A program made the position numbers and the translations under genes. A stretch of DNA of 64,000 nucleotides, from the NCBI GenBank assembly GCA_946965045.2, contig OX337236.1, positions 1,860,001-1,924,000 of the forward strand. Reading direction: 5' to 3'. The DNA comes from Epithemia pelagica (lineage: Eukaryota > Protista > Bacillariophyta). This document shows positions 13,905 through 64,000 of the stretch, piece after piece; position 1 is the stretch's first letter; every line of letters starts with the position of its first letter. The notes beneath the pieces are model-generated. The model saw nothing but the letters and a program-made list of their open reading frames with translations, was not told where the DNA came from and did not search any database.

Positions 13905-14528
13905 ATGATGAAGCTGGCCGTCGCACTTCTGATTTTCCTAAATGGAGCACATGCTTTTGTGTCTCCCATACCGAATGGAGCAACCACCACCACCACAAGA
14001 CTCCATGCCGAAGAAGAAGAAGAGGCCACAGAAGAAGCCGCAATGTTGGGTGCTCAAGCCATTTCGGCCTTGACCTCGTCCGTGTCGGCCATTTTTCCAT
14101 CGGAAGATGTGGATAACACCATCCCTCATCGATACCCCTTTGCCTTGGTGGATAAGGTTGTCGAATACGAGGCTGGTAAAAGAGCTGTTGGTATCAAGGC
14201 GGTGACCAAGAACGAAGAATTCTTCAACGGCCACTTTCCTGGACGACCCATCATGCCGGGTGTCTTGCAAGTCGAAGCCTTGGCCCAACTGGCGGGTATT
14301 GTCTGTTTGAAAATGGAAGGCAATGATGCGGGTGCCATCTTTTTCTTTGCCGGTGTGGATGGTGTCAAGTGGAAGAAACCCGTCGTGCCCGGTGATTCCC
14401 TCGTGATGGAAGTGGAAATTCTCAAGTTTAACAAAAAGTTTGGCTTGGTCAAGGCCACCGGAAAGGCCTGTGTCGATGGAGAAGTGGCCCTGGAGGTGGA
14501 AGAAATGACCTTTGCACTGGCCAAATAA
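13905..14528 (+). CDS. fabZ: Plastid beta-hydroxyacyl-ACP dehydratase
   Basis: [18 protein letters not shown] presequence. Motifs [34 protein letters not shown]. Confidence 0.95.
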
Positions 14529-14971
14529 TAGAACAACAACACAAGAGAGTTGCTACATAGACGAAACTATTAAACCGTACAATGCCACATTCTGGATGTG
14601 TAGGGGACTGTTGTATGCTTCTTTCACACAGTATTCGTATATCACAAGTTTCACCGTGCCACGAGTGTCACACGGACGCACGCAGTGTTTTCAAAATATT
14701 TAAGCCGTTTTGCATTGTGGTCTGATCTATGTGTAGACTGTAATGCCACATGTCTGCTAGAGTAGCAACAAAATCTTCCTTCCCACAGTGAGGACAATGT
14801 GGATTCTCTGTCGTAGAACAGAGTTCGAAGGGCCGTCCTCCGCCTTGTGGCTACACACACCACCGTTGGTATATGGAGTCATCTTGAACCTGTCCGTGGC
14901 ACGACAAGGATCGGACCTGGTGGCGGGTACCAATTCCAGATGGACTGAGGGGAATGTGAGGCGCGAGGTCG

Positions 14972-27777: not shown

Positions 27778-27997
27778 CTTTCAATTCCGAGACTCGCAAT
27801 GATGATGGATGGGATGTTGGTTGTCTCACAATCAATACAAAACTTGCGAGAGATCTCTCAAACAACTCGTCTGCCAAGTGATGTCGTCGCGTGTCTCATC
27901 AGTCGTCATCTCTCCCATCTTTCGCGAGACATCAACGTCACAAAATCAGTCCTTCTCCACTAAAAAAAATTTGAATCTATTATAACGCTGCCGCACG

Positions 27998-28169
27998 TGT
28001 CTTATTTTGCCTGTGGAAGCAAAATCCCACTATCGTAACAACATTCTTACCGATAACAAGAATTATACTACGTTCAAAGCAGAGACAAGAAAAGTAACCA
28101 TGTAAGCGGTAACATCAGCTTCTGTGGGTCTTGGATGTTCGTGATCGAGCTATCAGCCGGAATAAGACA
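27998..28169. repeat. LTR (left)
   Basis: 172 bp; two substitutions seen relative to 33858..34029. Confidence 0.92.
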
Positions 28170-33857: not shown

Positions 33858-34029
33858 TGTCTTATTTTGCCTGTGGGAGCAAAATCCCACTATCGTAACA
33901 ACATTCTTACCGATAACAAGAATTATACTACGTTCAAAGCAGAGACAAGAAAAGTAACCATGTAAGCGGTAACATCAGCTTCTGCGGGTCTTGGATGTTC
34001 GTGATCGAGCTATCAGCCGGAATAAGACA
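33858..34029. repeat. LTR (right)
   Basis: 172 bp, TG...CA ends with 9-bp terminal inverted repeat. Confidence 0.92.
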
Positions 34030-37980: not shown

Positions 37981-38206
37981 AATCAGTCCTTCTCCACTAA
38001 GGTTATCCGTACTGTACTATGGGTCGCGGTTTTTCGGGATATGGACGAGTACGTGTTCCCATCAAAACCCCAGAGTGACGAAGCAATGATAAGGCAAAAT
38101 ACTGAACAAGAACTTGACACCACTCGAAGGGGAGTGATGACAGATCTTGGAGAAGATACCGATCCGACGCACCAACGGCACAATCGAAACAAAAAAGGTC
38201 CCCACC

Positions 38207-38830
38207 ATGATGAAGCTGGCCGTCGCACTTCTGATTTTCCTAAATGGAGCACATGCTTTTGTGTCTCCCATACCGAATGGAGCAACCACCACCACCACAA
38301 GACTCCATGCCGAAGAAGAAGAAGAGGCCACAGAAGAAGCCGCAATGTTGGGTGCTCAAGCCATTTCGGCCTTGACCTCGTCCGTGTCGGCCATTTTTCC
38401 ATCGGAAGATGTGGATAACACCATCCCTCATCGATACCCCTTTGCCTTGGTGGATAAGGTTGTCGAATACGAGGCTGGTAAAAGAGCTGTTGGTATCAAG
38501 GCGGTGACCAAGAACGAAGAATTCTTCAACGGCCACTTTCCTGGACGACCCATCATGCCGGGTGTCTTGCAAGTCGAAGCCTTGGCCCAACTGGCGGGTA
38601 TTGTCTGTTTGAAAATGGAAGGCAATGATGCGGGTGCCATCTTTTTCTTTGCCGGTGTGGATGGTGTCAAGTGGAAGAAACCCGTCGTGCCCGGTGATTC
38701 CCTCGTGATGGAAGTGGAAATTCTCAAGTTTAACAAAAAGTTTGGCTTGGTCAAGGCCACCGGAAAGGCCTGTGTCGATGGAGAAGTGGCCCTGGAGGTG
38801 GAAGAAATGACCTTTGCACTGGCCAAATAA
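38207..38830 (+). CDS. fabZ: Second intact copy of plastid fabZ
   Basis: Translation identical to the 13905..14528 copy. Confidence 0.93.
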
Positions 38831-39276
38831 TAGAACAACAACACAAGAGAGTTGCTACATAGACGAAACTATTAAACCGTACAATGCCACATTCTGGATG
38901 TGTAGGGGACTGTTGTATGCTTCTTTCACACAGTATTCGTATATCACAAGTTTCACCGTGCCACGAGTGTCACACGGACGCACGCAGTGTTTTCAAAATA
39001 TTTAAGCCGTTTTGCATTGTGGTCTGATCTATGTGTAGACTGTAATGCCACATGTCTGCTAGAGTAGCAACAAAATCTTCCTTCCCACAGTGAGGACAAT
39101 GTGGATTCTCTGTCGTAGAACAGAGTTCGAAGGGCCGTCCTCCGCCTTGTGGCTACACACACCACCGTTGGTATATGGAGTCATCTTGAACCTGTCCGTG
39201 GCACGACAAGGATCGGACCTGGTGGCGGGTACCAATTCCAGATGGACTGAGGGGAATGTGAGGCGCGAGGTCGCTA

Positions 39277-41056
39277 CTATGGGATTTCCGGATGCCGAAT
39301 TTTCAAATACGCCGCCACAAGCTCCTCCACATGCAGGGGATCCCAACGTGCCGTTCCCTCCTTGTCGTGCTGTTGCTGGTGGTCCGTATCATTTTCTTGT
39401 TTGGCAACCTTGCTTTGGGGTGGCAGGGAATCATCATCACCCAAGTGCTTGTTCAATTGTTGGGCAATGGCCTGGGCGGTGGCGGCAAAGAATCGCAAGG
39501 TGGCAACTTCCGAGTCCACCACCAATGCCGCATAATAGGCACGGTCCTGATCCGGACGATCGGAATCCTTGTTTGGTTGCCTGGAATCGTGGTCGTCTTT
39601 TGCTCGCAACGACGACGACAAGACAAGGGTGCGTTGGGCTTTGGGAAAGGTATACGATTCCGCAAGTTCCAGCAATCGTTCTCGAAAGGCGGACAAGGCT
39701 TGTAATTCAGTTTGCAAGTCTTGTGGTGGTGGTGGTGGTTGATTTGGATGGGGGGAATCCATGGCGCTTGGTTCCCCATACAACAATTGATCATGATCGT
39801 CGTGGTCGTCTAGTTCAGGATCATGTTCTTCTTCTTCGTCGTCGCAGGCATTTAAAAAGGCCTCCATGTCATCTTCCATATCATCAACATCTTCTTCTTC
39901 TTCTTGTTCCTCTTTCATGCCATCATTGCCGTCGTGTTGTTCCATCCCATCTGTGGAAGCTGGCAAAGAATTCTTTCTAGTTTGGTGGTCTGGAAAAAAG
40001 GTTTCGAGTGCTTGCACAAACCCTCCATACGAATACGATTTGGGTCCTCGTCTCAGCACAATAATGCTTCGTTTTGGGTTGCTGCTTGTGGTCGTCCTCG
40101 TTGGAACAAATTCATAGATATCATTGCAAGATCCATCTGGTTCGATATTGTCCGCCAAGGCAAAGCCATAATTGAGCAAGAGTTGTCCATTGCTCTGCGC
40201 ACCGTACGTAATGGAAAGCATGGTTCCCGGTTGAAAACCATGGGTACTCTGGACAATGACTTGGTTGGCTTGAAACGTGTAGGAACACGATTTGCCAACG
40301 TTTGCGTTGCGAGGACCTCGATAATGATTGCACAAATCCAACAGGGGGACCAAGGTTGTGGTGGGACTCGCAGTGGTAGTTTCATTGGAAAAGGCGCGAG
40401 ATGAGACAATTGTCATGGCAACATCCAAGTCTTGATAGGAAAAGGTTGGAATTGTTGCCCCTATCGGCGCTCCATCCGTTCGAGTGTCGTCGTCCTCCTC
40501 CGGTCGTTGAAAAAGACTGGATCGGACGATGCGATTGTAATGATGTTGCAACATTATTTTTTGAGCGTCCACATGAGCCCGAATGGGAGACCCACCCAAC
40601 CATTGATCCAATTCCTGTAACGACCAATGACGGGGCAATAGTTGGAGCAGTTCTGTGGAGGATGGCAAACTGTCCCAATAGGGTTGCCACCAAGACGACG
40701 ACGACGAGGAGGAATCCAATCGCAACAGGGCCACGTAGACTGCCAATAAAATGTCTTGTTTGGAATAATACATCCATTCGTCGTCTTGTACGGTAGGGTT
40801 GGATTCCTTGGAAGAAGACGACAAGACTTGATCGAGTTGCTGGATCCAAACAGCGTACTGTCTTGTCGCTGCTGATGTTGCGGTTTTGGTGGTGGTGGTT
40901 GGCTCCTTGGTGTTGTTGAGTTCCTGTTTTGGTGCCTCCTCCTTGTCATTGTCGTCGTCATCCTCCTCCTCCTCCTCCTCCTCCTCCAGGTGAGGAAGGG
41001 TGATCCAATGTGATTTGGAGATTTTCATGACCACTTCTTGGACCGCCAAGGCACGT
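39277..41056 (-). pseudogene. 5'-truncated copy of the LSMT-type SET gene
   Basis: Homology to 14972..17011 stops at GCACGT (41056, equivalent to 16736). Start, promoter and the IRGLCWA motif are missing. Track start at 41109 is GTG in module flank. Stop is one codon early. Confidence 0.8.
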
Positions 41057-41285: not shown

Positions 41286-43316
41286 TCAATGTTCGCGAGC
41301 AGACAATCCACGCCATTGTTCCGGCAACCACCTTTTACCGGAAACCCCAAAGAAGCTTCGAAGCTGTGGTCTTGCAAGACAAGTCCATCCGCGCCTCTCT
41401 GATGGATTGACAGCAGGATGCCCACGGACACGATAGGAATTGGGCAACGTGGCAGGTTGATTTGGAATCTCTTTCCCTTCCTTTAGTTGGTATCCATAGA
41501 GATCATATGTGACAACCCCTGACTTTACATCCTTTTGCCACAAACAAACAAAAACATCGTACTCTGGAAATTTAGCAAACTTCGGGTAGTAAATAGAAAC
41601 TTTGGGAAAGTTCCCCTCCCAGTGATGGTTCGAACAGATTTCACCCAGTGCCTTCTGCAATTCTTGAAGATTCTTGACCATCGATATGGTCCGAGTGGCG
41701 GGCAATGGATAATTATAAAAGAGACTAGTCGAAATCGTCTTCATTTCGAAACGCGGAGTTGGGATGCACGAGACATCTCCAAAATTACCAGAAACATATC
41801 GCAACCAGAGAACAAGCAAAAACAAAGACTCCCATCCATCACCGCTTTCTTCTTTGCTCGTGCTCCAACTTTTCGCATCTTGTACGACTTGACTTTGCGA
41901 TAGTCCGAAACGACCTTGGATTGAACCTGCAAGATTTCCCAACAACTCCATCAAATAGCATGGTATCCAATAGCTTTTGCCATTGCCGTTATCCAAAAGT
42001 GCGTCAATATTCGTCCCTAGTGGCTCTCCGGAGAAGAAAGATCCCAAGACTCTTTGCAGCAAGTCGAAGTCCAATGTTGTACCACTACAAGCCCTCTCTG
42101 TACGACGGGCGATCTGCGCTTTCTCAGCGAGCCCTTCAACCGTAAGAGTTGTCACCAGCAATGCCGGAATGAGGCCGTAATAGAGAGCCATTCGCGGCGT
42201 GAGATCGGTGATATTTAGATTTTGTCTTGCACCTGATAGATCCTGAATCAGCGGTAAGGTTTTAACTTCCATGTCACGAAAGGAAAGGGACGGCAATGCT
42301 TTTTCTGGATTTGTTGAGCTCAAATGGGAAGAAAACACATAGTATCTTCCTCGTTGGGTGAGAAAGTTCTCCTTCAAGAAGAGTACAATGTCTTTGTCCA
42401 ATACCACGTTGTTCAACTCGTCAATCAACAATACGACTTGGTTGGTCCCAAGAAACGAAGACACCTCGTCTGCCGTGATGCTGTATTTCTTGATGGCTTT
42501 AAAATCATCACTTATCGCACCTGTCCTTAAACTCGCTGGACGAGCATCAAACGCAATCCGCCGGCAAAGCATTTCAAGACTCGAGTCTCCTCTCAAAATC
42601 TCATAATCGCAATTGGAGAAGTCGTTGAATGAGACAAAGAGAGTTGGAATACACTGTTCGCGAAGTGCCTTTGCCAACTCGTAGAGTGCCCTCGTCTTCC
42701 CTCCCCTGGAGCAGCGAGCCAGGGAAGTGATTGGGACTCGGTACGATCCATCGGCTGCATCCTCCTTCAGGCACAAATCCGTCACCCTCCCCACGATGTC
42801 ATCAAGCCATCCTTCTTGGCTTACGAACGGAGGTGTGATCGGTTCAAGATGAGGAATTTCCAAGAGGTTCATCCACTGTTGAGCCGGAATGCGGATTCTT
42901 TTTGGCGGACTTGCCTCTGGCACTGTCCATTGCACGCTTCTAAGTTTTGAGTTAAAATAGTAGGTCCGCCCCTCGCCGTCTACCATTTCTTGCCATCCTT
43001 CTGGAAGGGGCGGTGAATCTGCCGGTTGAGCTGGAATGCGGATTCTTTTTGGCGGATTAGCCTCAGGCACTGTCCATTGCACGCTTCCAAGTTTTGAGTT
43101 AAAATAGTAGGTCCGCCCCTCGCCGTCTACCATTTCTTGCCATCCTTCTGGAAGGGGCGGTGAATCTGCCGGTTGCTTCTGCGATGCACTCATTCCTAGA
43201 CATACTGTATCTTGATTGTGTTGTATAGTTGTTGTCGAGGTTGTTTCGCGTTTCGCTGCGTTGATGATGTTGGGACCAGCCCCGCTCTCACGCTTACGAA
43301 GGGATTTGTTGTCAGC
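41286..43316 (-). CDS. WW-WW + NTPase + nuclease module, copy B (own Met at 43193, 635 aa)
   Basis: Near-identical to copy A from 41057 to 43316 with an open frame. No credible host N-terminus is attached. Confidence 0.8.
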
Positions 43317-50739: not shown

Positions 50740-51217
50740 TAGGAATACTACTAGTACTACTATAATCCTATACAAAACGTAGTAGGTAGACCATTTGCAA
50801 CAATACTAGACAGACACGAGACGAGACCAATCACACAGTTTTTTCTATGTGTTTTTCCACCCGGAGCCTGCCAACAAAACACTCACGGGATCCCCCCTAG
50901 CAGCAACACAAAAGAACCACGGCTGTTGGTATTCCTCGCACCAACCAAGCTCTGGGAATTCGTAATCTTTCCCACTTCCTGTTAGAAAGCTCTTGAAGGA
51001 ACGAGAGGATGCTCCCAGACGCGTTCCGTTTTCTTCTTCTTGGACGGTCACTCTGTCGTTCTTTGCCTAGAACTGCAGATTCGGTGTGCTACACCTACAA
51101 AAAACAGAGAGTTCAAGAAGAATTCTAGAGACTATTCCTTACTTTGTTTCATCCGAGAGGCGAATCCCTAACTCTTGCTAAACACAAACGCACCTATTAT
51201 TGTCATTGCTATTCGTT

Positions 51218-52579
51218 TCACTGGCTTTGGGAGGCCCGTTGTCCTGCTTCCAGTTCCAGGGGGCCATCACCATCTGTGGTGGGAGGAGGAGGTCCATCTT
51301 TGGGATCAAATCCCATATTTTGTCTCCATCGTCGAAACAATTCCAATTGATAATCTTTATTGGCTCGAACTTTACTCGGTGCTTCTCGGACAATGGCCAT
51401 GACGTTCGCCATGCGTTCCGATCGTTGTCTCATGCGACGGAAATGAGCACGGATCCGCCATCGTTTTTCCTTCTTTTTAATTTTGCGGGTCAACCAGGCA
51501 CGACGCAAATGACGTCGTCGATGACGACTTCCACGAGTACCGGTACGGACCGGAAAGTGGGATCGTGCTTCGGCCAACAAGCGTTCGGTTTCTTCGGGGG
51601 AATATTCCAAGGCGGGAATATCACCCGTCTTGGTCGTTCCCATTCGTTCCTTGCGCAATTGAATCCGAGCTCGAATGCGCCGTTGGACGGTTCGTAAGGC
51701 ACGGAAATGACGATTGCGGGTATGACCCGACACAACTTCGGTCATTTGTCCCGTTTCGAAACCATCCACCATGATGGATTTTTGAAAGTCCACCCATTGT
51801 CGATGATGCGAGGCTACGGCGTCTTCATCCTTATTATCTTGTTCCAAAGCACCGGCTTTGGAAGCACCGACTTTGGCCAAGAGTTTTTGTTTGTCCTTCA
51901 TTTTACGGCGATGTTTTTCCTTGGCCGACAATTTTCGTTTCTTGCGACCCGCCATGCCGCGGTGTTGTTGGTGATGCCACACTGGAACACGAGAAATGCT
52001 CGGAACTCCCAACAAGAGGGGATTGGAGACTGCCATGGTTTGTGAAAAAGAACCACAAATTGTGTTTGGATGGTGACGGATGGTGGACCCACCCAGGGGC
52101 GAGGAGGAGAGCAGGATGGATGATGAACAAGACGACGACAACGCCCGCACCGTGGTTCCGGCAAGACATGTTCCAAGTGTCCCAGCCGGGTTGCAGGATG
52201 CCACTATTCCAATCGTTTTGTTGGTCTTGGAATGGATCAATGGCAATGAAATCCTGTGGCGACACCAAACGCCAATCCCACGGGTGGCGGCGGCGGTGGT
52301 GGTGGCCATCATCATGGTGATGATGATGATGGTGACTGCCTTGCCAGGAACAGAGGATGTCTCGAATGGTCTGGACCGACCATCATGCCGCGCGGGTCCA
52401 ACAAAAGATACCATGGCTGCCTGTCCGCTGTCCGCCTGACTTATTCCGCGACCGAAGAATTCTCTTCCGCGACCGACTACCACTACCCACTCTACCACCA
52501 CCACGACACCCACCCACGACACTAATGTTACTACTCCTATACTCCTACTCCCATGACCCAGAAAATGTTCTTGATCCAT
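51218..52579 (-). CDS. Hypothetical basic protein, possibly mitochondrial; parent of the N-terminus fused in copies C and D
   Basis: Long ORF. S/T/R-rich, acid-poor stretch from MMMATTT to HRGMAG resembles a presequence. Highly basic helical C-terminus. Confidence 0.6.
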   Translation of the reverse strand: MDQEHFLGHGSRSIGVVTLVSWVGVVVVVEWVVVVGRGREFFGRGISQADSGQAAMVSFVGPARHDGRSRPFETSSVPGKAVTIIIITMMMATTTAAATRGIGVWCRHRISLPLIHSKTNKTIGIVASCNPAGTLGTCLAGTTVRALSSSCSSSILLSSSPLGGSTIRHHPNTICGSFSQTMAVSNPLLLGVPSISRVPVWHHQQHRGMAGRKKRKLSAKEKHRRKMKDKQKLLAKVGASKAGALEQDNKDEDAVASHHRQWVDFQKSIMVDGFETGQMTEVVSGHTRNRHFRALRTVQRRIRARIQLRKERMGTTKTGDIPALEYSPEETERLLAEARSHFPVRTGTRGSRHRRRHLRRAWLTRKIKKKEKRWRIRAHFRRMRQRSERMANVMAIVREAPSKVRANKDYQLELFRRWRQNMGFDPKDGPPPPTTDGDGPLELEAGQRASQSQ

Positions 52580-52829
52580 ACGATTGTTCTAGACAAAATA
52601 GTGGAACAAGATTTTCTAGCACAGCGATCTACTTCTCCACATTTGCTAGAGGAAATGATGGAGGACATTTCATACTACTCTGCCCAAGGGCACCGGGACA
52701 AACGAGAAACGAACATCAACGTTTGGGTGTGTCGCGGTCAACCATGGAAAACCCGCACCAGTCTAGTTCTCTCGAGTCATATCCCACAAGCCCACAAGGA
52801 ACAGGAGTGTATATGTGTGCCTGTGTGTT

Positions 52830-54756
52830 GCGCTTTTTCTTTCTACCAGTTCGGTGTGTATTCTTCGATGCGACACGCTGCGCATCATTGAGACGATGGC
52901 CTTTTTTAGCAACTGGACCACGATCGTTCTCCTGATAGACGAGGTGTTGTACGTCACCAACTCGTAGTTTGTCGTCATGGTTGTATGGGCCAAGGCAAGC
53001 TTGATCAATAATTTGTGTGTCCCGCATGCTGGGAACAGCTCCTCCCCAGTCGTTATTCATGTTCAGAGCATTTAACCCATCGGATTGTTGTTTTCCATGA
53101 CCACTGCTTTGGTCGAACAAAAAGACAAAGTCATGGGCGGGGAACATGACCACGAGGCAATCGACAATATCCTCCAACTGCAAGGCCATGTATTCATAAT
53201 TCCAATATCCCTCTTTATCTGCTCCGTATTCAAAAAAGCGAGTGAACGGTTGGGCATTGGTAATTGGAGTCTTGGCAGTGTGACCATTGAGGTTCACTGC
53301 AGCCTCGGTAGAGACGTATTTGTTGTTTGTCGCATGTAGACGGAGTTCATTAATCCGAAATAGACTCGCAGCAAGCAACGGGTTTCCGTTCATAAGGAAG
53401 CCCCATGATCGGCTTACAAAAGTGCTGATCATCATCCCATGTCCATCATCCTTTGGCAGCATTTTAGTTGCGCCATCTTTAGTGTACCATGCCTTAGACG
53501 AGAAGGAAAACTGCTTGTAGATCGATTCCACATTTGGAAGTGCCTCCACGTTGGAAATGGCCCTTTCAAGGGTTTCTATCCATCGCTCAAGATTTCGTTT
53601 TGACGATCCTGGAGAATCGCATTTGCCGGCAAAGAGCCTACGGTTCCTTGGCTCATCAAAATAGGCGCTTTCCATTTGTTGCGATAGACCTTGGATCATC
53701 TCACTCTCGAAAACTGAAAAACCAATCGGCAAACTCTGTGGATGGTCATGGCCGATTTCGTCTGTGGCCAATTCAGGATGTTGGATTGCTCCAACAAGCA
53801 CCTGATTTGTGTTGTCGTGAGGTGGTGACGTTTGCATTTCGGTAGGGCTGTCTCCAATTTGTGGCGGTTGACCATGTTGCTGCGTTGCAGTGCTCTTGAT
53901 TGCTGGTGGAGTTGAAGTGTTTCTTGCTTGCTTGGATGTATTTAGCGTGCCTTCACGCAACCCTGGTGACTCTTCGTTCCTTCGCTTCGTTGGCTTCGCT
54001 CGTCCCGACCGCCGAATCACATTCTCGGCTGCAGCCTCCAGCCATTCTTGATGATCGTCCAACATCACTGGCAGGGTTGTTGTGTCTTTAGAGATGTAAT
54101 AGAATGTGAAGCGTTCCCTTTTGATTGTATCTCTGTAGCGGTAGAAGCCATACTTGTTTGGCTTTTCAACATCATCGAAACACATTGCAATGCTTTTTTC
54201 TCTTCGGAAAGCACGGTTCATTTCCAGCACAGACAATCCTGGCAACCAAGTGTTCATATATCCTACAAGCTCGACATCTCGGAACCACTTGTTGCAGAAT
54301 CCAAACACGGTGGGTGAGCACTGCTTCCGAAACAGTTCAACAATCTCGTTCCCAGAAAAACTTCGTTCCATCCGAGACTGTGCTGCGTGAGGTGAGTCCG
54401 ATGATCGTGTCATTGTGGATGATGTCGATGCGTTGAACTGTTGCCCCATTGGGGGTGGTTCAAGTAAACCCTAAAGCATCCGGATGCAGCTCGGCAACAG
54501 TTCAACGGGTCTGGGAGGCCCTCCACCATGGTCGTTAGACAACAACCGTTTTTTCATCATTTTGGACGGAATTCCAGCGTTCGGAAGCTGTCACGCAACA
54601 CACTAAAACACATAAAAATATATCATAAGACTCTGGGAAGTCTCGAGTCGGACACTTTCATTCACTAGTAAGGCCGAACGCTATTAAGGATTATACTCTA
54701 TGGTACTAAATCTACGAGGGGTCTACGTCAGGAACATACTCCCTGAACTCAGCTTG
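52830..54756 (-). mobile_element. Defective relative of the 7-kb transposon (internally deleted, 3'-truncated transposase remnant, ORF 52716..54449)
   Basis: Shares the N-terminal NKW..D.E...W.P.LS..MNR block, LPKDDGHG, YWNYEYMALQLED and FLFDQSSGH with 20722..23871. Lacks the first D region and the HCEL..E motif. Right end TGAACTCAGCTTG|TA resembles the TIR end TGAACCAGCTTG|TA. Confidence 0.8.
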
Positions 54757-54758
54757 TA

Positions 54759-55372
54759 TATTATCGGTGGGCGGACGCAGAGATGCGGAGCATGCGCGGC
54801 GCGCGCGCTCAAAATCCTCGACCGTCACGGAAACGCGTATGGGTCGCCTTAAGTATGGAATCGAAAAGGAAGGAGAAGAGCAACTTTGGGAAGACGATGG
54901 CAAGCAAAGGGGTGGTTTCCGGACGCAATAATCATTCCCTTTATAGACTACTTATCATTTAGAGTATCCATTGGATATTTCACCTGTTGTTCTGTTGGCC
55001 CTACGAGCTCATGTGGGAAAGACACGTCAATTTCCATGCTCTATGGAAACACAACCTCCACCATGAGGATGGAAAAGACTCCTAAAGAGCAAGGCAGCAA
55101 CAGTTGGCCGACTATATGTACTTGTCTACAATACTAGTGCCTAGATAGACTCTGTCATCGCTTTTGTCCATGACAAATCCATCATCGGAAGACTTCGACT
55201 GTTCGACGCATTGAGTGTGTGGTGTGTGGGCGCGTGATGTTGCTTCCAACCATGCTCCACCCGCACTCTTCCTCCGCATGTAAATTTTGCGAAGGAAAGC
55301 TCTACATCCGGGTTGGTTTGGCCTTTCTCCGCCCATATCATGCTTCGCACATGCTCCGCGCGCCCGATAATA
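54759..55372. mobile_element. MITE-like 614-bp insert, unit 1
   Basis: Ends TATTATCGG...CCGATAATA flanked by TA on both sides, with inverted subterminal GCGGAGCATG motifs. No long ORF. Confidence 0.5.
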
Positions 55373-55553
55373 TACCCCCTTAGCCTGCCGGCTTACCCGA
55401 CACGTTCATTCTGAACTCAGTCGAACTACCTACCTAGAGCAGTTAGCATCCCCATTTCAATTTTTCATTTTTCCACAAGATCTTTTCTCTTTTAAGATGT
55501 TATTCTCTTGTACTTGATACAGACCATCGTCCTCTTCGTAATCGCAACGGGTG

Positions 55554-58268
55554 TCAATGTTCGCGAGCAGACAATTCACGCCATTGTTCCGGCAACCACC
55601 TTTTACCGGAAACCCCAAAGAAGCTTCGAAGCTGTGGTCTTGCAAGACAAGTCCATCCGCGCCTCTCTGATGGATTGACAGCAGGATGCCCACGGACAAG
55701 ATAGGAATTGGGCAACGTGGCAGGTTGATTTGGAATCTCTTTCCCTTCCTTTAGTTGGTATCCATAGAGATCATATGTGACAACCCCTGACTTTACATCC
55801 TTTTGCCACAAACAAACAAAAACATCGTACTCTGGAAATTTAGCAAACTTCGGGTAGTAAATAGAAACTTTGGGAAAGTTCCCCTCCCAGTGATGGTTCG
55901 AACAGATTTCACCCAGTGCCTTCTGCAATTCTTCAAGATTCTTGACCATCGATATGGTCCGAGTGGCGGGCAATGGATAATTATAAAAGAGACTTGTCGA
56001 AATCGTCTTCATTTCGAAACTCACAGTTGGGATGCACGAGACATCTCCAAAATTACCAGAAACATATCGCAACCAGAGAACAAGCAAAAACAAAGACTCC
56101 CATCCATCACCGCTTTCTTCTTTGCTCGTGCTCCAACTTTTCGCATCTTGTACGACTTGACTTTGCGATAGTCCGAAACGACCTTGGATTGAATCTGCAA
56201 GATTTCCCAACAACTCCATCAAATAGCATGGTATCCAATAGCTTTTGCCATTGCCGTTATCCAAAAGTGCGTCAATATTCGTCCCTAGTGGCTCTCCTGA
56301 GAAGAAAGATCCCAAGACTCTTTGCAGCAAGTCGAAGTCCAATGTTGTACCACTACAAGCCCTCTCTGTACGACGGGCGATCTGCGCTTTCTCAGCGAGC
56401 CCTTCAACCGTAAGAGTTGTCACCAGCAATGCCGGAATGAGGCCGTAATAGAGAGCCATTCGCGGCGTGAGATCGGTGATACTTAGATTTTGTCTTGCAC
56501 CTGATAGATCCTGAATCAGCGGTAAGGTTTTAACTTCCATGTCACGAAAGGAAAGGGACGGCAATGCTTTTTCTGGATTTGTTGAGCTCAAATGGGAAGA
56601 AAACACATAGTATCTTCCTCGTTGGGTGAGAAAGTTCTCCTTCAAGAAAAGTACAATGTCTTTGTCCAACTCCACGTTGTTCAACTCGTCAATCAACAAT
56701 ACGACTTGGTTGGTCCCAAGAAAAGAAGACACCTCGTCTGCCGTGATGCTGTATTTCTTGAAGGCTTTAAAATCATCACTTATCGCACCTGTCCTTAAAC
56801 TCGCTGGACGAGCATCAAACGCAATCCGCCGGCAAAGCATTTCAAGACTCGAGTCTCCTCTCAAAATCTCATAATCGCAATTGGAGAAGTCGTTGAATGA
56901 GACAAAGAGAGTTGGAATACACTGTTCGCGAAGTGCCTTTGCCAACTCGTAGAGTGCCCTCGTCTTCCCTCCCCTGGAGCAGCGAGCCAGGGAAGTGATT
57001 GGGACTCGGTACGATCCATCGGCTGCATCCTCCTTCAGGCACAAATCCGTCACCCTCCCCACGATGTCATCAAGCCATCCTTCTTGGCTTACGAACGGAG
57101 GTGTGATCGGTTCAAGATGAGGAATTTCCAAGAGGTTCATCCACTGTTGAGCCGGAATGCGGATTCTTTTTGGCGGACTTGCCTCTGGCACTGTCCATTG
57201 CACGCTTCTAAGTTTTGAGTTAAAATAGTAGGTCCGCCCCTCGCCGTCTACCATTTCTTGCCATCCTTCTGGAAGGGGCGGTGAATCTGCCGGTTGAGCT
57301 GGAATGCGGATTCTTTTTGGCGGATTAGCCTCAGGCACTGTCCATTGCACGCTTCCAAGTTTTGAGTTAAAATAGTAGGTCCGCCCCTCGCCGTCTACCA
57401 TTTCTTGCCATCCTTCTGGAAGGGGCGGTGAATCTGCCGGTTGCTCCTGCGATGCACTCATTCCTAGACATACTGTATCTTGATTGTGTTGTATAGTTGT
57501 TGTCGAGGTTGTTGTCGCTTCATGTACAATCATTTCGTCAGCTCCAACAGAAGCTGCACCCAGATCCACGTCTCCGGTCATAACGTCGATCTTCCGCCTC
57601 TTGCTAAGTCCCACATGTGATTTTCGTTTCTTGCGACCCGCCATGCCGCGGTGTTGTTGGTGATGCCACACTGGAACACGAGAAATGCTCGGAACTCCCA
57701 ACAAGAGGGGATTGGAGACTGCCATGGTTTGTGAAAAAGAACCACAAATTGTGTTTGGATGGTGACGGATGGTGGATCCACCCAGGGGCGAGGAGGAGAG
57801 CAGGATGGATGATGAACAAGACGACGACAACGCCCGCACCGTGGTTCCGGCAAGACATGTTCCAAGTGTCCCAGCCGGGTTGCAGGATGCCACTATTCCA
57901 ATCGTTTTGTTGGTCTTGGAATGGATCAATGGCAATGAAATCCTGTGGCGACACCAAACGCCAATCCCACGGGTGGCGGCGGCGGTGGTGGTGGCCATCA
58001 TCATGGTGATGATGATGATGGTGACTGCCTTGCCAGGAACAGAGGATGTCTCGAATGGTCTGGACCGACCATCATGCCGCGCGGGTCCAACAAAAGATAC
58101 CATGGCTGCCTGTCCGCTGTCCGCCTGACTTATTCCGCGACCGAAGAATTCTCTTCCGCGACCGACTACCACTACCCACTCTACCACCACCACGACACCC
58201 ACCCACGACACTAATGTTACTACTCCTATACTCCTACTCCCATGACCCAGAAAATGTTCTTGATCCAT
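55554..58268 (-). CDS. Chimeric gene (copy C): N-terminus of the 51218..52579 gene fused in frame to the WW-WW/NTPase/nuclease module
   Basis: Junction at 57620 reads RGMAGRKKRK|SHVGLSKRRK. 904-aa open frame; internal Met at 57461. Confidence 0.8.
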   Translation of the reverse strand: MDQEHFLGHGSRSIGVVTLVSWVGVVVVVEWVVVVGRGREFFGRGISQADSGQAAMVSFVGPARHDGRSRPFETSSVPGKAVTIIIITMMMATTTAAATRGIGVWCRHRISLPLIHSKTNKTIGIVASCNPAGTLGTCLAGTTVRALSSSCSSSILLSSSPLGGSTIRHHPNTICGSFSQTMAVSNPLLLGVPSISRVPVWHHQQHRGMAGRKKRKSHVGLSKRRKIDVMTGDVDLGAASVGADEMIVHEATTTSTTTIQHNQDTVCLGMSASQEQPADSPPLPEGWQEMVDGEGRTYYFNSKLGSVQWTVPEANPPKRIRIPAQPADSPPLPEGWQEMVDGEGRTYYFNSKLRSVQWTVPEASPPKRIRIPAQQWMNLLEIPHLEPITPPFVSQEGWLDDIVGRVTDLCLKEDAADGSYRVPITSLARCSRGGKTRALYELAKALREQCIPTLFVSFNDFSNCDYEILRGDSSLEMLCRRIAFDARPASLRTGAISDDFKAFKKYSITADEVSSFLGTNQVVLLIDELNNVELDKDIVLFLKENFLTQRGRYYVFSSHLSSTNPEKALPSLSFRDMEVKTLPLIQDLSGARQNLSITDLTPRMALYYGLIPALLVTTLTVEGLAEKAQIARRTERACSGTTLDFDLLQRVLGSFFSGEPLGTNIDALLDNGNGKSYWIPCYLMELLGNLADSIQGRFGLSQSQVVQDAKSWSTSKEESGDGWESLFLLVLWLRYVSGNFGDVSCIPTVSFEMKTISTSLFYNYPLPATRTISMVKNLEELQKALGEICSNHHWEGNFPKVSIYYPKFAKFPEYDVFVCLWQKDVKSGVVTYDLYGYQLKEGKEIPNQPATLPNSYLVRGHPAVNPSERRGWTCLARPQLRSFFGVSGKRWLPEQWRELSAREH

Positions 58269-58518
58269 ACGATTGTTCTAGACAAAATAGTGGAACAAGA
58301 TTTTCTAGCACAGCGATCTACTTCTCCACATTTGCTAGAGGAAATGATGGAGGACATTTCATACTACTCTGCCCAAGGGCACCGGGACAAACGAGAAACG
58401 AACATCAACGTTTGGGTGTGTCGCGGTCAACCATGGAAAACCCGCACCAGTCTAGTTCTCTCGAGTCATATCCCACAAGCCCACAAGGAACAGGAGTGTA
58501 TATGTGTGCCTGTGTGTT

Positions 58519-60445
58519 GCGCTTTGTCTTTCTACCAGTTCGGTGTGTATTCTTCGATGCGACACGCTGCGCATCATTGAGACGATGGCCTTTTTTAGCA
58601 ACTGGACCACGATCGTTCTCCTGATAGACGAGGTGTTGTACGTCACCAACTTGTAGTTTGTCGTCATGGTTGTATGGGCCAAGGCAAGCTTGATCAATAA
58701 TTTGTGTGTCCCGCATGCTGGGAACAGCTCCTCCCCAGTCGTTATTCATGTTCAGAGCATTTAACCCATCGGATTGTTGTTTTCCATGACCACTGCTTTG
58801 GTCGAACAAAAAGACAAAGTCATGGGCGGGGAACATGACCACGAGGCAATCGACAATATCCTCCAACTGCAAGGCCATGTATTCATAATTCCAATATCCC
58901 TCTTTATCTGCTCCGTATTCAAAAAAGCGAGTGAACGGTTGGGCATTGGTAATTGGAGTCTTGGCAGTGTGACCATTGAGGTTCACTGCAGCCTCGGTAG
59001 AGACGTATTTGTTGTTTGTCGCATGAAGACGGAGTTCATCAATCCGAAATAGACTCGCAGCAAGCAACGGGTTTCCGTTCATAAGGAAGCCCCATGATCG
59101 GCTTACAAAAGTGCTGATCATCATCCCATGTCCATCATCCTTTGGCAGCATTTTAGTTGCGCCATCTTTAGTGTACCATGCCTTAGACGAGAAGGAAAAC
59201 TGCTTGTAGATCGATTCCACATTCGGAAGTGCCTCCACGTTGGAAATGGCCCTTTCAAGGGTTTCTATCCATCGCTCAAGATTTCGTTTTGACGATCCTG
59301 GAGAATCGCATTTGCCGGCAAAGAGCCTACGGTTCCTTGGCTCATCAAAATAGGCGCTTTCCATTTGTTGCGATAGACCTTGGATCATCTCACTCTCGAA
59401 AACTGAAAAACCAATCGGCAAACTCTGTGGATGGTCATGGCCGATTTCGTCTGTGGCCAATTCAGGATGTTGGATTGCTCCAACAAGCACCTGATTTGTG
59501 TTGTCGTGAGGTGGTGACGTTTGCATTTCGGTAGGGCTGTCTCCAATTTGTGGCGGTTGACCATGTTGCTGCGTTGCAGTGCTCTTGATTGCTGGTGGAG
59601 TTGAAGTGTTTCTTGCTTGCTTGGATGTATTTAGCGTGCCTTCACGCAACCCTGGTGACTCTTCGTTCCTTCGCTTCGTTGGCTTCGCTCGTCCCGACCG
59701 CCGAATCACATTCTCGGCTGCAGCCTCCAGCCATTCTTGATGATCGTCCAACATCACTGGCAGGGTTGTTGTGTCTTTAGAGATGTAATAGAATGTGAAG
59801 CGTTCCCTTTTGATCGTATCTCTGTAGCGGTAGAAGCCATACTTGTTTGGCTTTTCAACATCATCGAAACACATTGCAATGCTTTTTTCTCTTCGGAAAG
59901 CACGGTTCATTTCCAGCACAGACAATCCTGGCAACCAAGTGTTCATATATCCTACAAGCTCGACATCTCGGAACCACTTGTTGCAGAATCCAAACACGGT
60001 GGGTGAGCACTGCTTCCGAAACAGTTCAACAATCTCGTTCCCAGAAAAACTTCGTTCCATCCGAGACTGTGCTGCGTGAGGTGAGTCCGATGATCGTGTC
60101 ATTGTGGATGATGTCGATGCGTTGAACTGTTGCCCCATTGGGGGTGGTTCAAGTAAACCCTAAAGCATCCGGATGCAGCTCGGCAACAGTTCAACGGGTC
60201 TGGGAGGCCCTCCACCATGGTCGTTAGACAACAACCGTTTTTTCATCATTTTGGACGGAATTCCAGCGTTCGGAAGCTGTCACGCAACACACTAAAACAC
60301 ATAAAAATATATCATAAGACTCTGGGAAGTCTCGAGTCGGACACTTTCATTCACTAGTAAGGCCGAACGCTATTAAGGATTATACTCTATGGTACTAAAT
60401 CTACGAGGGGTCTACGTCAGGAACATACTCCCTGAACTCAGCTTG
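58519..60445 (-). mobile_element. Second copy of the defective transposase remnant (ORF 58405..60138)
   Basis: Tandem-unit copy with a few substitutions (N>D, R>Q, K>T). Confidence 0.8.
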
Positions 60446-60447
60446 TA

Positions 60448-61061
60448 TATTATCGGTGGGCGGACGCAGAGATGCGGAGCATGCGCGGCGCGCGCGCTCA
60501 AAATCCTCGACCGTCACGGAAACGCGTATGGGTCGCCTTAAGTATGGAATCGAAAAGGAAGGAGAAGAGCAACTTTGGGAAGACGATGGCAAGCAAAGGG
60601 GTGGTTTCCGGACGCAATAATCATTCCCTTTATAGACTACTTATCATTTAGAGTATCCATTGGATATTTCACCTGTTGTTCTGTTGGCCCTACGAGCTCA
60701 TGTGGGAAAGACACGTCAATTTCCATGCTCTATGGAAACACAACCTCCACCATGAGGATGGAAAAGACTCCTAAAGAGCAAGGCAGCAACAGTTGGCCGA
60801 CTATATGTACTTGTCTACAATACTAGTGCCTAGATAGACTCTGTCATCGCTTTTGTCCATGACAAATCCATCATCGGAAGACTTCGACTGTTCGACGCAT
60901 TGAGTGTGTGGTGTGTGGGCGCGTGATGTTGCTTCCAACCATGCTCCACCCGCACTCTTCCTCCGCATGTAAATTTTGCGAAGGAAAGCTCTACATCCGG
61001 GTTGGTTTGGCCTTTCTCCGCCCATATCATGCTTCGCACATGCTCCGCGCGCCCGATAATA
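60448..61061. mobile_element. MITE-like insert, unit 2
   Basis: Copy of 54759..55372. Confidence 0.5.
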
Positions 61062-61242
61062 TACCCCCTTAGCCTGCCGGCTTACCCGACACGTTCATTC
61101 TGAACTCAGTCGAACTACCTACCTAGAGCAGTTAGCATCCCCATTTCAATTTTTCATTTTTCCACAAGATCTTTTCTCTTTTAAGATGTTATTCTCTTGT
61201 ACTTGATACAGACCATCGTCCACTTCGTAATCGCAACGGGTG

Positions 61243-63954
61243 TCAATGTTCGCGAGCAGACAATTCACGCCATTGTTCCGGCAACCACCTTTTACCGGAA
61301 ACCCCAAAGAAGCTTCGAAGCTGTGGTCTTGCAAGACAAGTCCATCCGCGCCTCTCTGATGGATTGACAGCAGGATGCCCACGGACAAGATAGGAATTGG
61401 GCAACGTGGCAGGTTGATTTGGAATCTCTTTCCCTTCCTTTAGTTGGTATCCATAGAGATCATATGTGACAACCCCTGACTTTACATCCTTTTGCCACAA
61501 ACAAACAAAAACATCGTACTCTGGAAATTTAGCAAACTTCGGGTAGTAAATAGAAACTTTGGGAAAGTTCCCCTCCCAGTGATGGTTCGAACAGATTTCA
61601 CCCAGTGCCTTCTGCAATTCTTCAAGATTCTTGACCATCGATATGGTCCGAGTGGCGGGCAATGGATAATTATAAAAGAGACTTGTCGAAATCGTCTTCA
61701 TTTCGAAACTCACAGTTGGGATGCACGAGACATCTCCAAAATTACCAGAAACATATCGCAACCAGAGAACAAGCAAAAACAAAGACTCCCATCCATCACC
61801 GCTTTCTTCTTTGCTCGTGCTCCAACTTTTCGCATCTTGTACGACTTGACTTTGCGATAGTCCGAAACGACCTTGGATTGAATCTGCAAGATTTCCCAAC
61901 AACTCCATCAAATAGCATGGTATCCAATAGCTTTTGCCATTGCCGTTATCCAAAAGTGCGTCAATATTCGTCCCTAGTGGCTCTCCGGAGAAGAAAGATC
62001 CCAAGACTCTTTGCAGCAAGTCGAAGTCCAATGTTGTACCACTACAAGCCCTCTCTGTACGACGGGCGATCTGCGCTTTCTCAGCGAGCCCTTCAACCGT
62101 AAGAGTTGTCACCAGCAATGCCGGAATGAGGCCGTAATAGAGAGCCATTCGCGGCGTGAGATCGGTGATACTTAGATTTTGTCTTGCACCTGATAGATCC
62201 TGAATCAGCGGTAAGGTTTTAACTTCCATGTCACGAAAGGAAAGGGACGGCAATGCTTTTTCTGGATTTGTTGAGCTCAAATGGGAAGAAAACACATAGT
62301 ATCTTCCTCGTTGGGTGAGAAAGTTCTCCTTCAAGAAAAGTACAATGTCTTTGTCCAACTCCACGTTGTTCAACTCGTCAATCAACAATACGACTTGGTT
62401 GGTCCCAAGAAAAGAAGACACCTCGTCTGCCGTGATGCTGTATTTCTTGAAGGCTTTAAAATCATCACTTATCGCACCTGTCCTTAAACTCGCTGGACGA
62501 GCATCAAACGCAATCCGCCGGCAAAGCATTTCAAGACTCGAGTCTCCTCTCAAAATCTCATAATCGCAATTGGAGAAGTCGTTGAATGAGACAAAGAGAG
62601 TTGGAATACACTGTTCGCGAAGTGCCTTTGCCAACTCGTAGAGTGCCCTCGTCTTCCCTCCCCTGGAGCAGCGAGCCAGGGAAGTGATTGGGACTCGGTA
62701 CGATCCATCGGCTGCATCCTCCTTCAGGCACAAATCCGTCACCCTCCCCACGATGTCATCAAGCCATCCTTCTTGGCTTACGAACGGAGGTGTGATCGGT
62801 TCAAGATGAGGAATTTCCAAGAGGTTCATCCACTGTTGAGCCGGAATGCGGATTCTTTTTGGCGGACTTGCCTCTGGCACTGTCCATTGCACGCTTCTAA
62901 GTTTTGAGTTAAAATAGTAGGTCCGCCCCTCGCCGTCTACCATTTCTTGCCATCCTTCTGGAAGGGGCGGTGAATCTGCCGGTTGAGCTGGAATGCGGAT
63001 TCTTTTTGGCGGATTAGCCTCAGGCACTGTCCATTGCACGCTTCCAAGTTTTGAGTTAAAATAGTAGGTCCGCCCCTCGCCGTCTACCATTTCTTGCCAT
63101 CCTTCTGGAAGGGGCGGTGAATCTGCCGGTTGCTCCTGCGATGCACTCATTCCTAGACATACTGTATCTTGATTGTGTTGTATAGTTGTTGTCGAGGTTG
63201 TTGTCGCTTCATGTACAATCATTTCGTCAGCTCCAACAGAAGCTGCACCCAGATCCACGTCTCCGGTCATAACGTCGATCTTCCGCCTCTTGCTAAGTCC
63301 CACATGTGATTTTCGTTTCTTGCGACCCGCCATGCCGCGGTGTTGTTGGTGATGCCACACTGGAACACGAGAAATGCTCGGAACTCCCAACAAGAGGGGA
63401 TTGGAGACTGCCATGGTTTGTGAAAAAGAACCACAAATTGTGTTTGGATGGTGACGGATGGTGGATCCACCCAGGGGCGAGGAGGAGAGCAGGATGGATG
63501 ATGAACAAGACGACGACAACGCCCGCACCGTGGTTCCGGCAAGACATGTTCCAAGTGTCCCAGCCGGGTTGCAGGATGCCACTATTCCAATCGTTTTGTT
63601 GGTCTTGGAATGGATCAATGGCAATGAAATCCTGTGGCGACACCAAACGCCAATCCCACGGGTGGCGGCGGCGGTGGTGGTGGCCATCATCATGGTGATG
63701 ATGATGATGGTGACTGCCTTGCCAGGAACAGAGGATGTCTCGAATGGTCTGGACCGACCATCATGCCGCGCGGAGATACCATGGCTGATGGCTGCCTGTC
63801 CGCTGTCCGCCTGACTTATTCCGCGACCGAAGAATTCTCTTCCGCGACCGACTACCACTACCCACTCTACCACCACCACGACACCCACCCACGACACTAA
63901 TGTTACTACTCCTATACTCCTACTCCCATGACCCAGAAAATGTTCTTGATCCAT
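61243..63954 (-). CDS. Chimeric gene (copy D), same fusion as copy C
   Basis: 903-aa open frame, junction at 63309, internal Met at 63150. Confidence 0.8.
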   Translation of the reverse strand: MDQEHFLGHGSRSIGVVTLVSWVGVVVVVEWVVVVGRGREFFGRGISQADSGQAAISHGISARHDGRSRPFETSSVPGKAVTIIIITMMMATTTAAATRGIGVWCRHRISLPLIHSKTNKTIGIVASCNPAGTLGTCLAGTTVRALSSSCSSSILLSSSPLGGSTIRHHPNTICGSFSQTMAVSNPLLLGVPSISRVPVWHHQQHRGMAGRKKRKSHVGLSKRRKIDVMTGDVDLGAASVGADEMIVHEATTTSTTTIQHNQDTVCLGMSASQEQPADSPPLPEGWQEMVDGEGRTYYFNSKLGSVQWTVPEANPPKRIRIPAQPADSPPLPEGWQEMVDGEGRTYYFNSKLRSVQWTVPEASPPKRIRIPAQQWMNLLEIPHLEPITPPFVSQEGWLDDIVGRVTDLCLKEDAADGSYRVPITSLARCSRGGKTRALYELAKALREQCIPTLFVSFNDFSNCDYEILRGDSSLEMLCRRIAFDARPASLRTGAISDDFKAFKKYSITADEVSSFLGTNQVVLLIDELNNVELDKDIVLFLKENFLTQRGRYYVFSSHLSSTNPEKALPSLSFRDMEVKTLPLIQDLSGARQNLSITDLTPRMALYYGLIPALLVTTLTVEGLAEKAQIARRTERACSGTTLDFDLLQRVLGSFFSGEPLGTNIDALLDNGNGKSYWIPCYLMELLGNLADSIQGRFGLSQSQVVQDAKSWSTSKEESGDGWESLFLLVLWLRYVSGNFGDVSCIPTVSFEMKTISTSLFYNYPLPATRTISMVKNLEELQKALGEICSNHHWEGNFPKVSIYYPKFAKFPEYDVFVCLWQKDVKSGVVTYDLYGYQLKEGKEIPNQPATLPNSYLVRGHPAVNPSERRGWTCLARPQLRSFFGVSGKRWLPEQWRELSAREH

Positions 63955-64000
63955 ACGATTGTTCTAGACGAAATAGTGGAACAAGATTTTCTAGCACAGC

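Follow-up and report, generated by a model that had tools for sequence, protein, structure and literature searches.

Probable young tandem amplification of a three-part chimeric nuclease-like gene in a duplication-prone stretch of the genome of the diatom Epithemia pelagica

Introduction

The stretch considered here, called the window, comprises 64,000 nucleotides (C9:1860001-1924000; contig OX337236.1, GenBank assembly GCA_946965045.2) of the 60.5-Mb, 23-contig assembly of the diatom Epithemia pelagica, and it contains several copies of a gene module encoding a likely nuclease, two of which are joined in frame to the N-terminus of another gene. The question that this locus raises is how such a nuclease body came to stand behind a mitochondrial-looking presequence, and whether selection or a dedicated mechanism favoring organelle-type headers must be invoked. 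The answer that we hold to be probable is a young tandem amplification of a three-part chimeric gene in a duplication-prone stretch, a by-product of duplication and not a device for sending the nuclease to an organelle.

The analysis also took in 20 kb beyond the right end of the window, with the numbering carried on (extended numbering). Module copies A and B lie elsewhere in the window, while C, D, E, and F are the four copies of the array. The joint between the cassette, derived from a parent gene, and a leader derived from a gene called Z is named J1, and the joint between the Z leader and the module is named J2. The window genes include a plastid-type PDH-E2 with a signal peptide, with POP1 nearby, and the best named homologues of the locus proteins come from Epithemia, Discostella, Cyclostephanos, and Nitzschia.

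The tandem array and its units

The open reading frames (ORFs) 55554..58268(-) of 904 aa and 61243..63954(-) of 903 aa share their first 216 and 215 residues, respectively, with ORF 51218..52579(-), and beyond ...HRGMAGRKKRK both run on as SHVGLSKRRKIDVMTG... into the module. A reading made earlier from the sequence alone (the sequence-only reading) had described the module as fused in frame, at both sites, to the N-terminus of the 51218..52579(-) gene just after this motif, and the ORF comparison bears it out. The tandem amplification that it had proposed is seen equally in self-BLAST, where 51931-58314 matches 57620-64000 with 99.66% identity at a period of 5689 bp; units 1 and 2 differ at nine of these 5689 positions. 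Two more units, at 63309-68983 and 68984-74366, carry the array past the window end, and an 896-bp cassette copy at 74367-75253 closes it, giving a total of four units plus 896 bp (51931-75253; extended numbering). The array is bordered at one end by the C-terminal part of the parent gene and at the other by a truncated POP1 copy. Locally there are four module units and six cassette copies, with an identity among units of 98.8-99.8%.

On the minus strand, each unit is composed of the 896-bp cassette, a 110-bp leader, the module core down to the stop codon (55554 in copy C), a short 3' flank, and a 2.56-kb transposon block. The units lie head to tail between pre-existing direct repeats, and the terminal partial unit is that same repeat; four units plus 896 bp with such bounds are the pattern expected of unequal crossing-over. 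The cassette-leader joint is also present in a contig of an independent public run, and a separate ENA assembly has the gene order transposable element (TE)-fusion-TE-fusion-TE-parent.

Copies C and D are intact and keep a 2.4-kb frame open. The other two of the four array copies are broken, E by the loss of 11 bp and F by the loss of 281 bp. The ratio of nonsynonymous to synonymous substitution rates (dN/dS) of the module copies is approximately 0.7 against a 94% identical paralogue on contig 8 and approximately 1 among the recent copies. What is directly observed is the anatomy of the units, the sequence of the joints, the source of each part, and the decay of these two copies, along with the predicted folds described below.

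The cassette, the parent gene, and the captured presequence

There are seven cassette copies in the genome, six of them local and one inverted 220 kb away, as against one copy of the C-terminal part of the parent gene. The parent has 39 homologues, with 52% identity to an Epithemia protein, and its family is recognized by the conserved blocks WVxFQKSIxVxGFETGQ and YSxEETxRLL. Pfam assigned no family to the parent, and the parent-family profile had no match among PDB sequences. The alignment of the homologues includes their N-terminal extension, which has 46-95 residues, ends in R-S/G-F/M-A, and is followed by a lysine-rich patch; this indicates that the stretch ending in ...HQQHRGMAGRKKRK is native to the parent family.

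These extensions contain three to eight K+R and zero to two D+E, lack a signal-peptide-like stretch, and have a highest 15-residue hydropathy of 0.3-1.3. The head found here has 121 residues with nine K+R, no D+E, and a highest 15-residue hydropathy of 0.77, compared with 2.26 for the signal peptide of the plastid PDH-E2 in the window. Its acid-free run of 143-147 residues exceeds that of every other open frame in the window, and the head ends in RGM↓AG, an R-3-type cleavage context that corresponds to RSF↓A in the homologues. Judged by composition, a basic and acid-free head with a cleavage context and no hydrophobic signal peptide looks like a mitochondrial-type presequence of about 120 codons. 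The mitochondrial character that the sequence-only reading gave to it is thus plausible, the head being native to a conserved family with acid-poor, basic N-termini, no signal peptide, and R-S/G-F/M↓A ends. A plastid-type head was rejected because there is no signal peptide.

Candidate starts in cassette copy a are MMM (52315), MAVSN (52036), and MAGRKKRK (51955). Since the frame-breaking indels among the seven cassette copies are confined to positions upstream of 52359, the start is placed at MMM (52315; 58004 in gene C) or MAVSN (52036; 57725), and the long-ORF start MDQEHF... is very probably not coding. The MAVSN start is used in two ENA gene calls (P0001, 272 aa; P0040, 723 aa). Between 51931 and 52315, the seven copies differ by one synonymous change and one 3-bp indel.

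Gene Z and the two joints

J1 lies within a Ser codon at 57619/57620 and 63308/63309. The leader that follows it in copies C and D had been taken for a part of the module; it corresponds instead to residues 25-60 of the neighboring P-loop gene Z. It does differ, as the sequence-only reading had noted, from the leader of copies A and B, and comparison of the joints likewise makes the C/D fusion separate from the A/B fusion. Gene Z is an 813-aa ORF at 77734-80175(-) in extended numbering (L005:3734-6175) with the same cassette, J1, and leader, followed by a different P-loop body with the Walker A motif GPPGVGKT. There are two such parent-headed Z genes, the first at C9:1.936 Mb and the second at C9:2.143 Mb (L006:8-2164), both intact; because the same J1 heads intact Z genes at two loci, J1 arose for Z and not for the nuclease. 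A further Z copy, adjacent to the second of these genes at L002:4627-6457 (C9:2137626-2139456), begins at 4627 with an acidic N-terminus of its own, MMSESTAEEAGFATTEKRGEDDGD, likely the native start, and then reads directly HVGLSKRRKID...; this continuity of the native N-terminus with HVGL identifies the leader as residues 25-60 of Z. The natively headed copy has at least two frameshifts, and the cassette-headed Z copies are intact.

At the nucleotide level, J1 reads ...CGAAAAT/CA/CATGTGGGA, with one shared T and a 2-nt filler, and J2 lies inside an ACAAC(A/C)C microhomology of 5-7 nt common to Z and the A/B-type module. From their sequences, both joints look like signatures of end joining or template switching. 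An origin of the joints from splice sites was rejected, as they have no GT..AG and the native Z copy is continuous through the sequence. J1 is distributed over two loci and all units, J2 occurs in the array only, and the transposon block is in four of four units. The Z genes have a dN/dS of 0.69 and a dS of 0.02 between the two loci, and a word search for Z homologues returned only two relatives. The chance of a same-strand, in-frame joint had been put at about 1/6 each; it rises to 1/3 per joint, since the strand is fixed in direct, head-to-tail duplications.

The module body

The module body of 550 residues has more than 170 relatives, mostly from diatoms and marine metagenomes, which share invariant motifs including YGYQLKEG; CSRGGKTR (Walker A) and LLIDELN (Walker B) are also conserved. 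Apart from WW domains (PF00397, E 5e-20, 71.6 bits against a cut-off of 26.9), Pfam found nothing on the body, and PADLOC assigned it to no family. The two WW domains come from a 147-bp internal tandem duplication (57146-57296 = 57293-57443, 96.7%), and the same duplication is present at 26491-26788, 42878-43175, and 62835-63132.

An AlphaFold (AF2) model of the body, built with 60 relatives, reached a predicted local distance difference test (pLDDT) score of 91 (91.1). Residues 28-350, approximately, match ZAR1, Apaf-1, CED-4, Cdc6/ORC, PAB2304, Avs, TnsC, and MuB at VIA Z 11-12, and the region has Walker A and B motifs on a P-loop core with a helical region after it, as in STAND and ORC-Cdc6-like AAA+ nucleoside triphosphatases (NTPases). 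The last 199 residues, folded alone with AF2, again gave a pLDDT of 91. Their structural matches are weak (Z 3-5, best 4.9), and most of the 50 listed are PD-(D/E)xK nucleases, including Can2, Card1, Hjc, NgoMIV, Bse634I, MspJI, HamA, and VRR-NUC. The ESM Atlas matches of this domain carry the names Mrr_cat, PDDEXK_7, DUF4365, and RE_endonuc, and Foldseek with the domain alone returned no match at E <= 0.001. The E, D, and QxK motifs are invariant in the 60 relatives and placed on the expected predicted helix and strands. Weak but consistent VIA and Atlas matches, together with these motifs, make it likely that the C-terminal domain, a putative nuclease, has the restriction endonuclease (REase) fold.

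Relation to Crinkler/CR proteins

Crinkler/CR bodies that combine an NTPase with a nuclease are best known from oomycete pathogens. The module body lies near a cluster named Crinkler family protein in the ESM Atlas, with a score of 0.92. Most often, the C-terminal part of CR effectors has an NTPase before an REase (PMC5289972, summarizing Zhang et al., 2016), and the family is characterized by heads and bodies that can be exchanged, by tail-to-head copies, and by nuclear targets (PMC5289972). The predicted structures of the module contain such a C-terminal body with an NTPase fold and a likely REase fold, and heads and bodies are modular, as the cassette and leader head both Z and the module and a Crinkler-like head on contig 8 heads two bodies. 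No CR header domain was found in copies C and D, where Pfam finds only WW and the head consists of the presequence and the Z leader; for this reason, the two copies are not assigned to the CR family. The module family behaves like CR proteins.

The contig 8 locus (L003:2305-7182 = C8:3266304-3271181) comprises adjacent genes of 483 and 719 aa with an identical Crinkler-like head of approximately 115 residues and different bodies. The body of the 719-aa gene is 100% identical to the window module and is joined inside the first WW domain. PF20147 occurs in 29 of the 30 Atlas clusters nearest to this head; matched directly to PF20147, the head gives E 0.08 and 14 bits, below the cut-off of 24.6. 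The head of another relative, P0082, has a sub-threshold match (E 1.5e-4), and other relatives carry SAP, UCH, or ubiquitin-like-looking heads, typically followed by a KRxK patch; WW heads also occur in the family. The 94% paralogue, likewise on contig 8 (L004:4993-6756), lacks a head and has a single WW domain, and further copies of the body have low-complexity sequence upstream; the swap point differs in every paralogue. A few other places in the genome match PF20147 directly; at C6:3199530-3201599, two neighboring open frames of 606 and 470 aa match PF20147 just above the cut-off with canonical-looking Crinkler headers.

Targeting signals and transcription

The sequence-only reading had also seen a motif like a bipartite nuclear localization signal (NLS) created at the junction. 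A classical bipartite NLS requires a spacer of 10-12 residues, and the spacer in RKKRK-SHVGLS-KRRK has six. Each cluster is native to its source gene (RKKRK to the parent and KRRK to Z), and each alone fits the monopartite pattern K-K/R-x-K/R. Similar basic patches after the heads of the body's relatives suggest a nuclear protein. If translation begins at MMM or MAVSN, the product would bear an import-competent-looking presequence and two NLS-like clusters, and it might be bound for the mitochondrion, the nucleus, or both.

Among the sequencing runs containing this stretch, none is recorded as RNA. Of four runs of the same organism, three resemble genomic DNA; the fourth (X4), of unrecorded type, has 39 Mb of contigs for the 60-Mb genome. 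X4 leaves the transposon block and 52264-52601 without cover, and it covers the POP1 3' untranslated region (UTR; 52602-52826), the parent, the cassette at 51931-52263, the leader, and the module body. At the module 3' end, X4 contains only the variant of the 94% paralogue, and no listed contig bridges J2. X4 behaves like a transcriptome, and if it is one, the family and the cassette are transcribed, with a 5' end near 52263-52320. The module family is also transcribed in other diatoms, as MMETSP and EukProt matches show. One gene caller starts the Z fusion at an internal Met (P0160).

In copy A (24899-27777), the fusion ORF begins in the lipoyl region of PDH-E2, and the plastid signal peptide and first lipoyl domain lie in a separate ORF (27292-27777). 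A plastid-addressed product of copy A would therefore need an intron or read-through.

Proposed history and competing explanations

What we infer from these observations is in which order the events took place, how the array was amplified, and where its product is addressed. Each 5.7-kb unit would be made of the cassette (promoter, presequence of approximately 120 codons, and AGRKKRK), 36 Z codons including KRRK, and a Crinkler/CR-type body, the parts having been joined by end joining or template switching. J1 would have formed first, giving a parent-headed Z gene, and J2 later, when the nuclease body replaced the Z body behind the Z leader. With two cassette copies flanking the new gene and the transposon block, unequal crossing-over could then have produced the array. 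The inferred relative ages are accordingly J1 before J2 and J2 before the array. In-frame joints would have been frequent enough at a chance of 1/3 each, helped by the retention, and the notice, of open fusions. An overlapping repeat that contains POP1 sequence, together with the inverted cassette copy at 2.14 Mb, points to repeated rearrangement of the neighborhood. That second repeat (74253-76277 = 79678-81688, extended) includes the leader, the cassette, and the last 1012 bp of POP1. Truncated POP1 (last ~1 kb) adjoins cassette copies at 75254-76277 (extended; L005:1254-2277) and at C9:2141388-2142225; intact POP1 lies at L005:6676-9414, and the POP1 stop codon is at the edge of the 896-bp cassette.

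Several observations weigh against this history as a purely neutral by-product. The frame is kept at all joints whose partner is clearly coding (J1, J2, PDH-E2 in copy A, and the L003 header), which has a probability of (1/3)^4, approximately 1%, if unbiased, and some selection for open fusions is thus likely. Over the seven cassette copies, the 385-bp presequence coding part has two events against 19 in the 511 bp upstream (binomial P ~1e-3), and between the two Z loci it does not vary at all, even though the Z dS is 0.02, which suggests that the head is translated and constrained, or homogenized by gene conversion. In addition, an order of events built from single tandem duplications was tried and fails, as any history that adds one new joint at a time is at odds with at least one of the two loci. 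Taken together, we see in this a family of recent origin and weak constraint, whose open fusions persist for some time, and not selection for organelle addressing.

One alternative is that the units are polymorphic cassettes like those of CRN proteins, in which a constant promoter and header with swapped NTPase-nuclease bodies is selected to diversify an effector or conflict repertoire. The same cassette and leader do head two P-loop bodies, Z and the module, the Crinkler-like header on contig 8 stands on two different bodies in tandem, and the module body has the CR-type architecture. Nevertheless, the swap points (EATT/TSTTT in the array, inside WW1 at L003, and none at L004) reveal no fixed site like HVLVxxP, the head is borrowed from a housekeeping-type gene and lacks the header-domain fold, Z has only the two relatives of the word search and its body is known just as a P-loop protein, and constraint is weak with broken copies. 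We regard this explanation as unlikely.

Similarly unlikely is that the fusions were dead on arrival, their ORFs silent or not translated from the captured head and the array neutral junk with pieces of transposons. The dN/dS near 1 among recent copies, the two broken units, the transposon debris that makes up half of each unit, the lack of a run recorded as RNA that contains the stretch, and the internal Met used by the P0160 caller for the Z fusion would all fit. Against it, copies C and D keep their 2.4-kb open frame behind a conserved head, the transcriptome-like X4 has contigs over the module body, over the leader, and over the cassette as far as 52263, and family members are transcribed in other diatoms (MMETSP, EukProt).

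The sequence-only reading had inferred that selection or a mechanism favors organelle-type headers, giving plastid- and mitochondrion-addressed versions of one nuclease; copy A would be the plastid form, C and D would be the mitochondrial form, and the nuclease would act on organelle DNA. The head does have the composition and the R-x-(F/M)↓A end of a mitochondrial presequence, as in the homologues, and the fusion retains the whole head with its cleavage-site context; its coding part varies unusually little among copies, C and D remain unbroken, and a second fusion, to a gene for a plastid protein, lies in the same window. The preference itself finds no support, as J1 was made in Z and not in the module and both joints carry end-joining signatures. 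On its other copies, the body does not stand behind an organellar head; the head is Crinkler-like, absent, or replaced by low-complexity upstream sequence. Two of the four units are broken at a dN/dS of 0.7-1 (about 1 among the recent copies), two NLS-like clusters follow the head where relatives have the basic patches typical of nuclear proteins, and the plastid signal peptide of copy A lies outside the fusion ORF. Selection for organelle headers is consequently quite improbable to us, and we are equally doubtful that a Crinkler-type nuclease was re-addressed to organelles through captured presequences, from a gene for a mitochondrial protein in C and D and from the plastid PDH-E2 in A.

A mis-assembled or over-expanded repeat is extremely improbable, for although the X1 and X2 contig depths of the cassette (~3x) and the module (5-6x the single-copy flank), ratios that do not equal copy numbers, fall below the assembly copy counts, the units differ by private substitutions and indels, J1 is found in run contigs, and the second assembly has the same order.

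Comparison with known systems

The module resembles CR effectors in its predicted NTPase and REase-fold body, shuffled heads and bodies, head-to-tail copies, and basic NLS-like patches after the head, a likeness of architecture. It differs from them in that C and D have no header domain, their head being an organelle-type presequence with a piece of Z; WW domains precede the NTPase; there is no fixed recombination motif; and the diatom that carries the module is free-living and is not known to deliver proteins into other cells.

AACRNL is a Crinkler-like protein whose header has degenerated and which is multiplied along with neighboring transposons in free-living eukaryotes (PMC12957317). Both systems have a Crinkler-type toxin body that has lost the canonical header in a free-living eukaryote, amplified beside transposable elements. 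AACRNL is an ADP-ribosyltransferase in teleosts with experimental support, in contrast to a diatom NTPase-nuclease known from sequence and models, and the transposon pieces here give no sign of moving the body.

The prokaryotic STAND/AAA+ NTPase-nuclease conflict proteins (Avs; TnsC/MuB with REase partners) share with the module an NTPase fold at Z 10-12 and a C-terminal PD-(D/E)xK-like domain with D...QxK; the module differs in being eukaryotic, in having WW domains, and in lacking a PADLOC match and sensor repeats. Lastly, chimeric genes born by segmental or tandem duplication, through capture of a promoter and 5' exon, and amplified later when flanking repeats cross over unequally, have direct same-strand joints with microhomology or filler. 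The same is seen here: the amplified segment stands between copies of an 896-bp direct repeat, its units share 98.8-99.8% identity, and there are pieces of transposons at its borders. What sets the present case apart from them is that a whole targeting presequence was captured and handed on twice, from the parent to Z and from Z to the module.

Other features of the window

The coordinates of the features of the locus are given in Table 1. A 577-aa ORF at 52716-54449(-) runs across pieces of the transposon block, matches no Pfam family, and is a read-through of an internally deleted element; in fuller genomic copies, T1 and T2 are approximately 0.9 kb apart. The contig depth of the block is 20-40x in the DNA-like runs. 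Three repeat families make up the mosaic spacer of each unit: one of 702 bp, of which over 25 copies exist at 99%, one of 1231 bp, and one of 627 bp that is MITE-like, with inverted ends of ~64 bp nearby in other copies. Another repeat, of ~53 bp at 55374-55426, has more than 25 copies.

Table 1. Coordinates of the parent gene, the cassette copies, and the parts of the array units within the window.
Feature	Position	Strand	Remarks
Parent, C-terminal coding part (conserved diatom protein)	51218..51930	-	50800-51930 single copy in genome
Cassette copy a, native context, 896 bp	51931..52826	-	POP1 stop and 3' UTR remnant, intergenic/promoter, presequence coding part to ...RGMAGRKKRK
Transposon pieces T1 (52827-53528), T2 (53528-54758), T3 (54757-55383)	block 52827..55383	.	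each with own genomic copy set
REase-fold domain (predicted), copy C	55554..56153	-	E/D/QxK motifs 56088-56111, 55815-55835, 55743-55766
STAND/ORC-Cdc6-like P-loop NTPase and helical region (predicted), copy C	56157..57125	-	Walker A 56958-56981, Walker B 56679-56705
Two WW domains, copy C	57186..57422	-	PF00397
Leader of copy C (S-HVGLSKRRKIDVMTG...VHEATT), from Z residues 25-60	57510..57619	-	J2 microhomology ~57506-57518; J1 57619/57620
Candidate internal Met (MTGDV), downstream of J1 in copy C	57581	-	
Cassette copy 2, promoter and head of gene C	57620..58515	-	MMM 58004, MAVSN 57725, MAGRKKRK 57644
Transposon-derived block of unit 2	58516..61072	.	self-comparison, genomic copies
Fused gene copy D, body and leader	61243..63308	-	one synonymous change vs copy C body
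Cassette copy 3, head of gene D, crosses window end	63309..64000	-	array continues beyond

Another large rearrangement involving the module is seen at 12663-16736, a 4-kb stretch duplicated as two pieces (26928-27963 and 37981-41056) that flank module copies A and B; the pieces overlap by 20 bp (13679-13698) and lie approximately 10 kb apart. Within 27998-34029, direct repeats of 172 bp (27998-28169 and 33858-34029; 98.8%) bracket 5.9 kb with a strongly negative GC skew, which looks like a long terminal repeat retrotransposon inserted in the duplicated stretch.

Significance

The locus allows the birth of a chimeric gene to be followed almost base by base, as the presequence and promoter of a housekeeping-type gene would have passed to a P-loop gene and from there to a nuclease gene by two end-joining events, with unequal crossing-over afterwards. 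It also shows NTPase-nuclease bodies of the Crinkler/CR type in a free-living diatom, where they belong to a young family that changes fast and has exchangeable heads. Should the fusion enter mitochondria, it would be a natural re-addressing of a DNA-cutting conflict protein to an organelle, and should the organelle reading be true, it would bring selfish or regulatory nucleases into organelle-genome conflict, copy-number control, or uniparental inheritance. If the fusion is not mitochondrial, the locus would still illustrate cleanly how duplication drives exon shuffling, and it would caution against taking in-frame fusions in such a stretch as necessarily adaptive.

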